Shown here: positions 7,481 to 18,394 of the stretch, piece after piece
How positions within the stretch are numbered: position 1 is the first letter of the stretch
Layout of the letters: each line of letters begins with the position of its first letter
NCBI GenBank assembly: GCA_029953675.1
Contig: JAMWBK010000001.1
Coordinates: 372,001-436,000, forward strand
Length of the DNA: 64,000 nt
Origin: Rhodosorus marinus CCMP1338
Lineage: Eukaryota; Plantae; Rhodophyta
Direction of reading: 5' to 3'
Program-made: the position numbers and the translations under genes
Notes under the pieces: model-generated
Database searches by the model: none
The model's input: only the letters and a program-made list of their open reading frames with translations
Told to the model about the DNA's origin: nothing

Positions 7481-8359
7481 TTAGCTCTCCTGACCCTCGA
7501 TCTTGGGAGCAAGATAATATCGGACGTATCCGACGTCCTTGTCAATTGCGAACTCAATACGGATGGGGTACTCCTCGCTCATGGACAGGACCACGGTGTC
7601 GCTCAGTGCGGCAGCTTTGGCAAAAATGTTGAGGAACTTGAGCGAGAACGTGGACTTGACTGGTTCCACCATTGTAATCTTCACTCCGTCTTTGGGCTTG
7701 TCTACGGATGCGCTCTTCTGAAGGCAGATGTTTCCTGAACCAATATCGCCCTTCGTGCTGAAGCTTGCGCCGCCCTTGTTGATCTCGATTGTTACAGAAT
7801 CGCCCATGGTTGAGAGGTCACCCATAATCCTTCGAAACTCAGCGGAGGACATCTCTACTGTGCTCGTGTAGTCGGATTCAGGGATTCCGAGCATTTCTTG
7901 GTCGATGACCATCAATTTCAGCTGGAAATCAGAAATCCTGTCGTTTTTCTTCGATTCGAACAAAATGTCCATCGTGTTCGGCTCATTCTCATCTGCTTTC
8001 AACGTCACGCTGTCGTCCGAGGCCGCGCATTTCAAAACCTTCGCGAGCGAGTCAATCTTCACGCCAAGGGATACATTCCGCTCACATTGATACACTTCAA
8101 AACTCGAAGCTCGGACCATGAAGCAGACCAGCGATATATGTGAAGAATCCATTGACTGAAGCACGCAATAAGACAAGAACAGACAATCTAGTTCAGAACC
8201 ACCGAACGAGAAACTGCAAACCGCTGAGGAACACATCACACGTACCTGCATAACAATTCCATCATCGTTGCAGTCCCAGTTGGCCTCCTGTACAAGATCC
8301 CGAACACTGTCCAGGATCTTCTTCAGCACAGCCGACTCCTCCAGTCGAGCTTCAAACAT
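7481..8359 (-). CDS. PCNA: Proliferating cell nuclear antigen (2 exons; 90-nt intron 8156-8245)
   Basis: MFEARL..., MQ|SMDSSHISLV, CERNVSLGV, and C-terminal YYLAPKIE. Confidence 0.98.
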   Translation of the reverse strand: MFEARLEESAVLKKILDSVRDLVQEANWDCNDDGIVMQVRVMCSSAVCSFSFGGSELDCLFLSYCVLQSMDSSHISLVCFMVRASSFEVYQCERNVSLGVKIDSLAKVLKCAASDDSVTLKADENEPNTMDILFESKKNDRISDFQLKLMVIDQEMLGIPESDYTSTVEMSSAEFRRIMGDLSTMGDSVTIEINKGGASFSTKGDIGSGNICLQKSASVDKPKDGVKITMVEPVKSTFSLKFLNIFAKAAALSDTVVLSMSEEYPIRIEFAIDKDVGYVRYYLAPKIEGQES

Positions 8360-8569
8360 AATTTTTCTCCTTTCAGAAAAGAAAAGACAACAAAAAAAAC
8401 AAAAACTGCCTTCGTATTCCTCCCAAAAGAGACAACACAAGCTCTTCCTCTAACTCTTACAGAAACACTAACCTTGGAATCCCCCTTCCCCCAACCCCTC
8501 CCCAAAGAAGAAGCTGCCTAGCTTAATGGCGTGTATATAAAGACGGCATCCCCGCGCCAGCAACATCCA

Positions 8570-9267: not shown

Positions 9268-10466
9268 CTACGATTGGTTTTCTTGAGATTGACCCATGCT
9301 TTTCCAAATGCTGATTTGTTTCCCAGGCTTCTGCGGGTTCTCGTCGTCGGCGGAATCAGTACTCGGGCTGCTAGCTGAAATGTCCGGCTCAGCTTGCGTT
9401 TCGAAACACCTCTCTCCGTAAATAGTACAGAAGAGGTTCGCGTCTGGATGCACTGAGACGTCGCTCAAGCAGTCATCAGCGCACTGCGCTGGTTCCCATA
9501 GCTCTGACGTCTTCAGGTCGAAGCGCCGTAGGCAGCCTGATCGATCGCCGGAGTACAAATACGTTCCGCTTCGATCTATGTCGATTCCGATTCTCTGGTT
9601 GGAATCTGAAAGTCGCCCGAACGGCGAGATTTCGGAGTCGGTATTTCTGATATCCCAAACTGTTAATCGAGTAGCACGGATTAGAGGGACATCTGTGTGA
9701 TCTGTTGGGTTAAGCCGAGCGGAAATATCTCCTTACTGTGGATTACGTTATCACGACGACCGGCGACGAAAATTGTGTTGCCGTCTGGAGATCCACAGAT
9801 GTCAATAACGCCAGTTGAATTACATCCTAGTACCGCTGTGGGGCCCGCCTTCTGCATCGTTCTTGGGTCAAAGATGCCGACGGATCCGGAAAAGGATCCA
9901 ACGAGCATCAGATTTGACTCTCCCGGCATCCAAGAAATCGTAGATAAGACGCCTCGCAGTCCCCTGTGCTTACTTTTCTGACCGGTGGAGATCTCGATGC
10001 AGTCCCTTCCAGGACTACTGATGTCGAAGACCCTTATGAGAGATTCGAACCCACAGTAGAGCTTCTCTCCTGACGTAGGGAAAGACACGCTACAGGGTGC
10101 GCTGATTTCGTCCATCCGGTCGAAGCACCTGTAACTAGCGCGCAGGCTTCCAGAATATGCATCCCAAAGATGCACAGGAGTGTCTTTGCAGCAGGTCGCA
10201 AACACACAGGTCACAGCGTCCCAAGAGTTCATCAACGGATACCATGCCAAATCACGGACAGATTCGCTCTCAGAGAGCTTCACGGCAGGCTCCAGAGTTG
10301 CCATCTGCTGGGTTTCATACAGCTCAACAAAGCCGCCTTCTCCGCTTACAATAAAGCAGGATCCATCTGGGGACCATTCCGCACGTCTTGGCAGCTTCCT
10401 TTGCTCCTGGCTTGAAACCCCGATCTCCTTGAGCTCATCTCCCAAAGACCTCTCAGTCACCGTCAT
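9268..10466 (-). CDS. WRAP53: WD40 protein WRAP53/TCAB1 (telomerase Cajal body protein 1; Swt21-like), 2 exons
   Basis: Family-typical WSPDGS, WYPLMNSWDAVTCVFATCCKDTPVHLWDAYSGSLRASYR and LYCGFESLIRVFD. The second exon is in ORF 9268-9558. Confidence 0.85.
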
Positions 10467-11543: not shown

Positions 11544-12352
11544 ATGGCGTTTGTTTTAGGTTTATCGAGTCAGAATGTGAGAACCCAGGCTGGAAGTGTG
11601 CGGAAGTGCAGTCGTGTTCGGATTCGGAGCTCAGCTGTTGAGAGCGGGGAGGAGATTTCTGAGAAGTTGAAGCAGCTCTTTCAGAGACAGAAGGAAAGAC
11701 CTATATTTGATCACGATAGGTTTGGCGGAGCGTGGCTGGCCGCTGAGAATGAGCTGAGGTGAGGTGGTTTATACCCTTATCCATAAAAAAATTCGTGCTT
11801 TGATTGCGGATGCTGAGGGCGGTGAGGCTTTTGTATCTGTAGATTTTTTTCGGATGAAGAGCTGGCTAAGGTTGGGAACGCAGCGCAGAGAAGTTCCGCT
11901 ACTGCTCTTCGGGATGCGGTTGAGTCGATCGTGACCGAGTCGCGCGAGAAGCTCCTCCAGGAGTTTCCAAATATCACGGTAGGGACTGAATATCACCGTG
12001 CAGAAGCATATGGACTCGTTAAAGTAACAAAAAATCTGATCTTCAGGAGGAAGGAGGTGCTCTGTATCCTCCTTTCCGAAGCGAGGCCTGCTGGCGCGAC
12101 TTTTGGCACTTCACCAGAGTGGCGAGCTATGGTTGCTCCCTCGACGAGTCAGCGTTCCTGAACAAAGACGGACTTGGAATCTTGGAAGAAGTCTACACAG
12201 AGCTTTCAGTGCCTCTTGATGCAATGCTCTACGGCACACGGCAGTTGAAGATGGAATCGCAGAGGTCGGTAAATTCGGAGGAGGAAAAAGAAATCGTTGG
12301 AAGATCCTTCGACACAGTGATCAACAGTCTCAGCGACTTCATCAAAAGGTAA
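11544..12352 (+). CDS. Nucleus-encoded, plastid-targeted phycobiliprotein-fold protein (allophycocyanin-alpha/AplA-like); exons 11544-11758, 11843-11978, 12047-12352
   Basis: Spliced protein: MAFVLGLSSQNVRTQAGSVRKCSRVRIRSS (transit peptide)...AAENELRFFSDEEL...IVTESREKLLQEFPNITEEGGALYPPFRSEACWRDFWHFTRVASYG...GLGILEEVYTELSVPLDAMLYG...SFDTVINSL. This is colinear with the phycobiliprotein motifs ADAEARYLS.GEL, PGGNAY..., CLRD.DYYLRLVTYG and G..EMY.SLG.P. Confidence 0.85.
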
Positions 12353-15169: not shown

Positions 15170-16838
15170 ATGAAGCCGAGGATACTACGGTCCAGAACGA
15201 ATCGAAAGCGAGGATCTGTGGATGAAGCGGCAATCCAGAATCCGAAGGATGGGAAGACGGAGCATCCACTGTGGGTTATGAAGCGTCAGGGAGCTGCTGA
15301 CAAGAGCATGTCGAAGAAAGTAGATGAGAGAACGGTCGATGATCAGACTACGGATGACGAGGTGGACAAAGAAATCGAGATTGAAGACGTGACTTTGGAG
15401 ACCATCGATGCTGATGTGGATGGGAGCAACTGCGCCAAGGATACGAAGCGTAACTCTGCCAACTCGGTTGTTACGTTGGATAAGGAGCCGAACCAAAGTC
15501 CTTCCACTCCAACAGAACGGCAGAGGTATGTCGGTTAATGAACTTGTCCATGCTTGGGGCTGGCAGATGTCCTAAACCTCTTTTTCTTTGAATCCTCTCC
15601 GAAAGGGGAAGCAACTGGTCGAAAAGGGTGAGCAATTGGTCTGACGAGGAAGATAGAATTCTAACCAAGTGCGTGGCAAAGTTCGGAGCTAAGAATTGGA
15701 AAGTCATTGCCACGCATTTGCCGAACAGAACGGACATCCAGTGCTTGCATCGCTGGAATACCGTGCTTAACCCACAGCTTGTGAAAGGACCATGGACAAA
15801 GGAGGAGGATGACGAAATACGGTTCCTAGTTTCACAGTACGAGACGCCCCGCTGGAGCTTGATTGCCAAACATCTTCCCGGACGTATTGGAAAGCAGTGC
15901 AGGGAAAGATGGCTTCATCACCTGAGCCCAGAGGTCACAAAGAGTGCTTGGACAGCACAGGAAGAGGAGACTCTCAGAGAGGCACACTCTCGACTAGGCA
16001 ATCGCTGGGCGGAGATTGCCAAGCTGTTGCCAGGTAGGTCCGACAACGCTGTAAAGAACCACTGGAATTCATGTATGCGAAGGAGCAGCGTGAGAAGAAA
16101 ACGGAAGTCTGGGGACCCAAGTGACATAGAGAACATTGAGGTAGATAAAAATTCCAAGCGTTTCCAACCCACGTTTTCGGGGGGGCTGAGGTCTAAGCGC
16201 TATGTCTTGTGTTCGTTTTTCAGGTGGAAACCAGTTCACCGGTCCAAGGCACGCCCGAAATGGCGAACAAAATTTATCTTTCTAGTGAGGAGCTACGACA
16301 GCAATCACCTCAAGAGTACCAGGCCAGCGCAGTGCTTACCGCGATGTCAAGTTGCGCCCGGGCGATGCAGCAGAGCTCGCCCGTTCCGGAAGAGAAGAGA
16401 GCCGGGGACTCGCCTCCATTGACCTCTCCGGTCGGAAAAAGCCCTTTCCGATTCGTCACTTACGAGCCCAACTTTCATCGGAAGACTCCGTCCATTCTAA
16501 GTCGAAAGCAGTTGACAGCACGTATTGCGAACGCAGATACAACTTCCAAGGCGCAAGTTGCTGACCCTAGCGAGAGGCAGCAGAAGGTCCCAGCTATATT
16601 CAACCGGGGGAAGACGTCCCGAACAGAGCGAAAACCGGACGCACGAGAGCAAAAGAGCTCAATGTCATTTTTTACAAAGGCTTCAGCGTCCGCAGCAGCG
16701 AATTATTCAGCAGCACACCGTCCTGCTCATGCAACGCCAACAAAGCAGATCGTGAAGAGGAGCATTACGACGGATTTCGATTCCAACGCAAGAAGCGGTC
16801 TAGCATCCGACCAAGTCCGACAAATTAGTACAAAGTAA
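15170..16838 (+). CDS. MYB3R: Three-repeat (3R) MYB transcription factor, c-Myb/MYB3R type, 3 exons
   Basis: Three repeats: WSDEED...[16 protein letters not shown]...[14 protein letters not shown]...[25 protein letters not shown]. Confidence 0.92.
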
Positions 16839-17648: not shown

Positions 17649-18394
17649 CTACTGCGGACCGCCGGGGGGAGCTCCCGGTCCCTCGCCAATGTTTGCAGGG
17701 AGGCCAAAGCCTGGAGAATAGAAAAGATACGTTAGATTTGTGCTTCACCTCTGCCTTTGGAGGCGATTTTGTGACACTCTTTCCGAAGAACGTACTAGCT
17801 GTTAAGTTACTCAAGTTGGTCTGCATGTGTGCCACGCTAATTCTGTGAGCTTCCTTGAACGCCTCAGTGCATGCCTCTGAAACCTGTAATCCGGTCAAAA
17901 ACGTGACCTCGCTGAGAGATCATTCTAGTGCAAACAAATCTTGCGCGCATGGTTTTACTCACTGCTTCTGAGCCTTCCCCCAAGAGTTCTTCCGAAACTT
18001 CGACACTAAGCGGTACCTGATTCCCAGTCATCACGACTTTCACCAAACCGTCACGAGCCTTCACAGACGAGAGAGGATGCAAGTTAGCTAAGACTACGAG
18101 CACATACATCGATTTTGGCATGATCAATGTTTTCCAGAAAAAGCCACTCACAGTTCCCTCCAGCTCAGTAGCCGCAAGCTCCTCCTGCATAATCTTAGTC
18201 TCCTTTGTAAACTCCTGCGCCTTCTTGTAGGCATCCATGATCTTTCCCATCTGCCCGAACATCCCGAAAGGCTTGTTAGCATCACCACCCCCCTGAGCCA
18301 TCATCATCGGACTACGGCGTGTTCTTCTAGACACACAAGTCCGTGACCCAGACTTCAGAGGCAGAGCTCCCACTCCCACAAATCCAATACCCAT
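17649..18394 (-). CDS. Plastid-targeted YbaB/EbfC nucleoid-associated family protein (STIC2-like), 4 exons
   Basis: Transit peptide MGIGFVGVGAL..., then MGKIMDAYKKAQ...MQEELAATELEG, DGLVKVVMTGNQVPLSVEVSEELL, EAFKEAHRIS...LTASFGLP. Confidence 0.88.

Follow-up and report, generated by a model that had tools for sequence, protein, structure and literature searches.

A 64,000-nucleotide (nt) stretch of the nuclear genome of the red alga Rhodosorus marinus CCMP1338 (GenBank assembly GCA_029953675.1, contig JAMWBK010000001.1, positions 372,001 to 436,000 of the forward strand; hereafter the window) was found to contain a gene for a divergent phycobiliprotein, called here the Apl (AplA-like, allophycocyanin-like) protein. 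The gene lay on the forward strand and comprised three exons (Table 1), the spliced coding sequence of 657 nt being in frame and encoding 218 amino acids (aa). The list of open reading frames (ORFs) for the window revealed it only as fragments of 72 and 77 aa, so that no single ORF showed the protein, as a first-pass annotation made from the sequence alone had pointed out. The three-exon model proposed in that annotation was exact in both of its introns: the spliced translation was identical at every residue to GenBank KAJ8908408.1 (P0025, “hypothetical protein NDN08_005117 [Rhodosorus marinus]”). Two proteins from independent R. marinus MMETSP transcriptomes (P0001 and P0002) matched it over 100% of the length at 89–90% identity and continued across both junctions (...AAENELR-FFSDEEL... 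and ...FP(N/T)IT-EEGGALYP..., the hyphen marking the junction), and the two introns were thus confirmed by transcripts of sister strains. These results indicated that the Apl gene of R. marinus is a real, three-exon gene that is expressed as transcripts.

Table 1. Features of the Apl gene and neighbouring genes in the R. marinus window (position 1 is the first letter of the window)
Feature	Position	Strand	Remarks
Exon 1	11544-11758	+	Codons 1-71 and 2 nt of codon 72; start ATG, presequence and family-specific N-terminal helix
Intron 1	11759-11842	+	84 nt, GT..AG, phase 2
Exon 2	11843-11978	+	136 nt, residues 72-117
Intron 2	11979-12046	+	68 nt, GT..AG, phase 0
Exon 3	12047-12352	+	Residues 118-218; stop TAA at 12350-12352
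Presumed plastid transit peptide	11544-11645	+	Residues 1-34, MAFVLGLSSQNVRTQAGSVRKCSRVRIRSSAVES; without cyanobacterial counterpart
PF00502 phycobiliprotein domain	11739-12331	+	Residues 66-212; both introns interrupt the domain
Apl-family signature, GGALYPPFRSEACWRD	12053-12100	+	Residues 120-135; alignment-derived
Cys132 codon (tgc), presumed bilin attachment site	12089-12091	+	Equivalent to ApcA Cys81; alpha-84 in consensus numbering
PCNA	7481-8440	-	Neighbour of the Apl gene
WD40 protein	9681-10466	-	Neighbour of the Apl gene
3R-Myb (three-repeat Myb)	15628-16422	+	Neighbour of the Apl gene
YbaB/EbfC-type protein	17864-18394	-	Neighbour of the Apl gene

The Apl protein matched the phycobiliprotein profile PF00502 over profile positions 5–155 of 155 and scored 111 bits (cut-off 22.2; E=6.9e-32), which is far beyond chance. 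Six NCBIfam equivalog models of canonical subunits (ApcA, ApcB, Cpc and Cpe) matched it weakly and all far under their cut-offs, the highest being ApcA with 56.8 bits (cut-off 270); ApcB gave 49.3 bits (cut-off 228). Among solved structures in the PDB the top matches were ApcA chains, at E values of about 2.5e-12 and about 25% identity. In these alignments Cys132, within the motif EACWRDFWHF, stood opposite Cys81 of ApcA in “TATCLRD”, both having the C-x-R-D pattern of a bilin site. The UniRef100 entry tied to KAJ8908408.1 (A0AAV8V408) carries the name “BSD domain-containing protein”; its only confident Pfam match was PF00502, and the name looks like a slip at source.

The nearest relatives beyond Rhodosorus were proteins from cyanobacteria, named “phycobilisome proteins” and about 192 aa in length (41–46% identity, E about 1e-33), followed in the ranking by a series of longer proteins carrying N-terminal extensions. 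An alignment of these proteins gave the signature GGxLYPxxRxxACWRDxxxFxR, which is present in the R. marinus protein; the core of it, GGxLYPxxRxxACWRD, was derived in the present analysis and is not taken from a published definition. CWRD occurred in nearly all Apl-type matches, whereas canonical phycobiliproteins have C[LI]RD, and members of the family had about 30 residues ahead of helix X that are without equivalent in canonical subunits. Judged by these sequence features, the R. marinus protein belongs to the Apl branch of the phycobiliprotein superfamily and is not a canonical antenna subunit.

An exhaustive profile search returned 318 cluster representatives, and N-terminal extensions were present in more than 30 of these. 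The organisms named among the eukaryote-type members were Rhodosorus, two Porphyridium species and Agarophyton. A maximum-likelihood (ML) tree of 94 rows was built under LG+C20 with canonical outgroups assigned by NCBIfam; no cryptophyte member was located for it, including Guillardia theta XP_005827057. In this tree the canonical subunits (ApcA, ApcB, CpcA, CpcB and CpeB) were divided from the Apl family at 100/100, and the R. marinus protein was not nested inside canonical ApcA/ApcD. The 46 eukaryote-type sequences with presequences formed one clade (100/99), nested among non-picocyanobacterial cyanobacterial Apl proteins, and within it the window protein and an MMETSP Rhodosorus sequence were paired at 100/100. 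Because all eukaryote-type copies fell in a single clade inside cyanobacterial Apl, the simplest reading is that an aplA-type gene was transferred once from cyanobacteria to the nucleus, probably early in the red lineage. The first-pass annotation had likened the protein to divergent AplA-like proteins that are not standard antenna subunits, and this was borne out: the PF00502 match was strong, the introns were spliced as modelled, every NCBIfam score was under its cut-off and the branch to canonical subunits was separate. For the role that the annotation proposed (bilin carrier, sensor or assembly factor, in a nucleus-controlled bilin pathway) the sequence gave no sign.

A nuclear location was evident from the two spliceosomal GT..AG introns and from the nuclear genes on either side (PCNA, a WD40 protein, 3R-Myb and a YbaB-type protein), all on a GenBank contig of 3.8 Mb. 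In the alignment, residues 1–34 of the Apl protein had no counterpart in cyanobacterial homologues. This segment contained six basic residues (K/R), one acidic residue (D/E), eight Ser/Thr and a Phe at position 3, and its residues 1–27 were disordered in the AlphaFold2 model described below (predicted local distance difference test score, pLDDT, <50). A Phe-containing N-terminus was seen in most other eukaryote-type members as well. Transit peptides of rhodophytes and glaucophytes are basic and rich in hydroxylated residues, and a Phe near the N-terminus is their distinguishing mark. The N-terminal ~34 residues are therefore presumed to be a plastid transit peptide of the red-algal type.

The single chain was modelled with AlphaFold2 from a 55-sequence alignment, and the model was all-helical with a pLDDT of 86.3 and a predicted template modelling score of 0.81. 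A Foldseek search against the PDB ranked ApcD and ApcA chains first and gave a probability of 1.0 to ApcA, ApcD and CpcB chains, in agreement with the complete phycobiliprotein fold that the first-pass annotation had described. The globin core could be superposed at 2.0–2.2 Å over 129–135 columns (smURFP 7uqa, 9ka8 and 9wg7_P2), while superpositions that included the N-terminal X-Y helices gave about 8.3 Å. In canonical subunits these helices clasp the partner subunit. The model thus predicts that the N-terminal helices of the Apl protein are positioned otherwise than in canonical subunits, a prediction that is no proof of a different oligomer.

Ten residues were invariant across the 55 Apl members (G120, L123, R128, A131, C132, W133, R134, D135, Y167 and P173), and R141 was nearly so. 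The core of the bilin site, Cys-x-Arg-Asp, did not vary in cyanobacteria or in eukaryotes and is thus under strong constraint in both. The N-terminal part behaved differently. Asp13 of canonical subunits forms an alpha-beta salt bridge with Arg93. At the equivalent position, 30 of the 34 cyanobacterial Apl proteins had Asp; of the 21 eukaryotic members, 14 had Gln and the others Glu (as in the R. marinus protein) or Ser. Gln49 and Pro53 were invariant in eukaryotic members only. From these substitutions it seems that the interaction surface at the N-terminus was altered after the transfer.

A pattern scan, limited to a single genome for each species, revealed Apl relatives in 477 cyanobacterial genomes. 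The surroundings of 80 cyanobacterial Apl loci (L007–L086) were then surveyed by tblastn; the locus of Fremyella diplosiphon/Tolypothrix PCC 7601 lies outside this set. Rod-linker genes were located within 4 kb of the Apl gene at 33 of the 80 loci, representing at least 14 genera; we estimate, without a formal null, that a linker gene would be rare in a random 8-kb window. At 35 of the 80 loci an unk5-like pentapeptide-repeat gene was near the Apl gene, often about 2–2.7 kb upstream and at a nearly constant distance. In Calothrix, about 3 kb separated the Apl gene from three cpeCDE-like linkers downstream of it. The trio of linker, aplA and pentapeptide genes was also present in the rod region of picocyanobacteria (L003, 5001–5600, and neighbours).

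One Synechococcus member (P0014) was part of a cluster consisting of cpcBA, a cpcG-like linker, an unknown gene, P0014, a pentapeptide protein, ferrochelatase and rod linkers. The “Type IIB” arrangement (PMC6363710) places aplA where P0014 is placed, the layout being given in PMC2246261 too, and the description of unk4/aplA/unk5 by Six et al. (2007) and Grébert et al. (2022) fits the cluster. P0014 was identified as aplA because its gene context matched this published layout.

Lee et al. (2019; PMC6811547) have described a nuclear-encoded, plastid-targeted allophycocyanin-like protein and credit its first report to the 2013 genome paper of Porphyridium purpureum. Their carriers were Erythrolobus, P. 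purpureum, Rhodosorus marinus and cryptophytes (G. theta XP_005827057); the proteins grouped with cyanobacterial allophycocyanin-like globin domains (cd12130), in independent agreement with the placement found here, and among red algae the family was confined to Proteorhodophytina. The existence, plastid targeting and cyanobacterial origin of the gene, as well as its occurrence in Rhodosorus, have thus been published before, and the novelty implied in the first-pass annotation did not hold. A literature search for later functional work on eukaryotic Apl proteins found only that same study, and papers on cryptophyte scaffolds and on Neopyropia linkers made no mention of the family. Three results go beyond the published account: a homologue in an Agarophyton chilense assembly, a second, short eukaryotic subgroup, and the recurrent adjacency to rod-linker genes in cyanobacteria.

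The Agarophyton homologue (P0179, CAN8064224.1) came from an Apl-type gene that lacked introns and encoded a presequence (L091, 1589–2323); the gene was located on contig CBFFQO010004832.1 of the A. chilense assembly GCA_965643885.1 and adjoining a phosphoglycerate mutase gene. In the ML tree it was placed in a large sub-clade of eukaryote-type sequences. A. chilense belongs to the Florideophyceae, and the Apl gene in its assembly is at odds with the published restriction to Proteorhodophytina; more than 30 further eukaryote-type clusters were present as well. The short subgroup (P0209, P0212, P0216, P0217, P0306, P0214 and P0304; 171–209 aa) showed the pattern “LSxxAxxLLxAYxxxPLY...CWRDLxxFLA”. 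Within the eukaryotic Apl clade it made up a separate group on a long branch (100/99), and it may be a paralogue.

The APC-like (allophycocyanin-like) protein of P. purpureum (KAA8495026.1, P0149) shared the 100/99 eukaryote clade with the R. marinus protein, and both had a presequence, an N-terminal helix and a PF00502 domain with CWRD, but the two were only about 37% identical. Cyanobacterial AplA/Apl proteins (cd12130) resembled the R. marinus protein in the signature, in an N-terminal “LSxxAKxLIxK...” and in domain length, identity being 41–46% to the Calothrix type. They differed from it in that the R. marinus gene is nuclear, with introns and a transit peptide, and in that their “KARIVSF” segment is replaced by “Q..xRPIFD” in eukaryotic members. 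Canonical ApcA/ApcD chains (4f0u_A, 4po5_A and 6kgx_AH) had in common with it the globin-like fold, the alpha-84-type Cys and the Arg-Asp after this Cys. They are plastid-encoded, unlike the R. marinus gene, and were separated from it by the low identity, the equivalog cut-offs, the clade division, the extra N-terminal segment and the Trp after the Cys. The founding AplA is that of Fremyella diplosiphon, reportedly described by Montgomery et al. in 2004.

Taken together, the Apl protein of R. marinus is probably a plastid-imported product of a nuclear gene that serves as a low-abundance, non-antenna accessory biliprotein tied to phycobilisome rods. The precursor would consist of the ~34-residue transit peptide followed by a mature protein of about 184 residues. 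Once in the plastid stroma, the mature protein would have one bilin attached at Cys132, the likeliest enzyme being an S/U-type lyase as at other Cys-82-type sites. It would then act as an accessory to the rods and not as a bulk antenna subunit, and would help either to assemble or turn over the rods or to regulate them in a bilin-dependent way. The link of the red-algal protein to rods is drawn from the cyanobacterial gene neighbourhood.

Several points weigh against this proposal. The neighbourhood counts are partly non-independent, many of the loci being from Microcoleus, and what holds in cyanobacteria need not carry over to red algae. The tie to the founding AplA is indirect, running through picocyanobacterial aplA and the cd12130 assignment of Lee et al. 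Bilin attachment, localisation and partners of the eukaryotic members are predictions. Arg141, which corresponds to a conserved Arg in canonical subunits, is kept in the Apl protein, and a phycobiliprotein-like dimer with some partner is therefore still conceivable; a tblastn search of the window found no second phycobiliprotein-like gene that might be such a partner. Further, although none of the chains in the phycobilisome and megacomplex structures solved for P. purpureum (6kgx, 7y5e and others) was the orthologue P0149 (top PDB match, E=1.3e-12), as would suit a non-antenna role, cryo-electron microscopy models can miss components that are loosely bound or substoichiometric.

The main competitor is a photoreceptor or bilin sensor unconnected to phycobilisomes, which would signal the colour of the light or the status of free bilin in the plastid. 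Such a role has been proposed for cyanobacterial AplA (Six et al.), and the invariant bilin motif and the absence of the protein from solved phycobilisome structures would both agree with it. The protein, however, consists of nothing but a domain of about 184 aa, in which neither Pfam nor the AlphaFold2 model showed an output or signalling module, no photochemistry of any Apl member was found in the literature examined, and the recurrent linkage to rod-linker genes argues for a role related to phycobilisomes; we regard a sensor of this kind as unlikely. An apoprotein that carries no bilin and acts only as a scaffold or chaperone, for example by docking to rods or linkers during assembly, would suit a family whose genes cluster with linkers. 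It would also suit the N-terminal helices being modelled elsewhere (root-mean-square deviation ~8.3 Å for the whole chain against ~2 Å for the core). The Cys, Arg and Asp of the bilin motif are nonetheless invariant across cyanobacteria and eukaryotes, which is hard to explain without a chromophore and leaves this possibility with little to recommend it.

Hardly more can be said for an ordinary allophycocyanin subunit of the ApcA/ApcD core type that moved to the nucleus and still works in light harvesting; this is, if anything, slightly less probable. The GenBank annotation of the P. purpureum orthologue reads “Allophycocyanin alpha chain”, and ApcA/ApcD gave the top PDB and NCBIfam matches. 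Yet the NCBIfam ApcA score was about one fifth of its cut-off, the Apl family is divided from canonical subunits by a 100/100 branch, CWRD stands in place of CLRD behind the extra N-terminal segment, the Asp13 equivalent has been lost in most eukaryotic members, and the orthologue is no chain in the P. purpureum phycobilisome structures. That the gene is non-functional, being either cyanobacterial contamination or a decaying transferred copy, can be set aside as refuted. It was suggested only by the general rule that red-algal phycobiliprotein subunits are plastid-encoded, and it is contradicted by the spliceosomal introns, the nuclear genes on both sides, the intact frame, the full-length transcripts in two other strains, and orthologues with presequences across red algae that keep the invariant core residues.

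Phycobiliprotein apo-subunits are a textbook case of genes retained by the red-algal plastid genome, and a nuclear, presumably imported, non-antenna member of the superfamily is a useful exception and a route to the function of the Apl family. The present analysis is of practical value beyond the published account: the gene model is clean and the structure model confident, the invariant residues are specified (C132, W133, R134, D135, R128 and R141), there is evidence of a spread in red algae broader than reported, and a recurrent link to rod linkers suggests where function should be sought. A more far-reaching proposal, to which we give only a small chance, is that Apl biliproteins are a pan-rhodophyte nuclear family, including Florideophyceae and a shortened paralogue lineage, of bilin-charged rod regulators or assembly factors. 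If this were true, the nucleus would have gained a bilin-dependent handle on antenna construction.

Some further observations were made on the neighbouring genes and on single members of the family. In the window, the N-domain match of PCNA was in two pieces, which suggests an intron, and the YbaB-type protein had an N-terminal extension and is possibly plastid-targeted. Two gene-dense eukaryotic contigs (L002, 6001–9711, and L090, 2416–5834) had the common order Apl, D-Tyr-tRNA deacylase (-), WD40 (+) and Fcf1/PIN (-), a microsynteny that was absent from the Rhodosorus window. Three members from sequences of high G+C content (P0239, P0211 and P0283) contained poly-Ala/Gly tracts and gave the impression, no more, of being Bangiales-like. 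In P0239 (290 aa) the motif region read “...RPPAGATFGTL...”, the sequence obtained when the EACWRDFWHF region is translated in the +1 frame, and this copy is therefore either frameshifted in the assembly or a pseudogene; an alternative-frame ORF of the window (11931–12161) reads “ARPAGATFGT”, comparable to P0239. Among cyanobacterial members, P0131 and the Okeania sp. locus L059 had an extra N-terminal segment of about 75 residues, coiled-coil-like, giving totals of 261–273 aa. P0155 (353 aa) and P0208, in which the C-terminus of an ABC transporter precedes the Apl domain, seem to be either fusions or genes that were miscalled.

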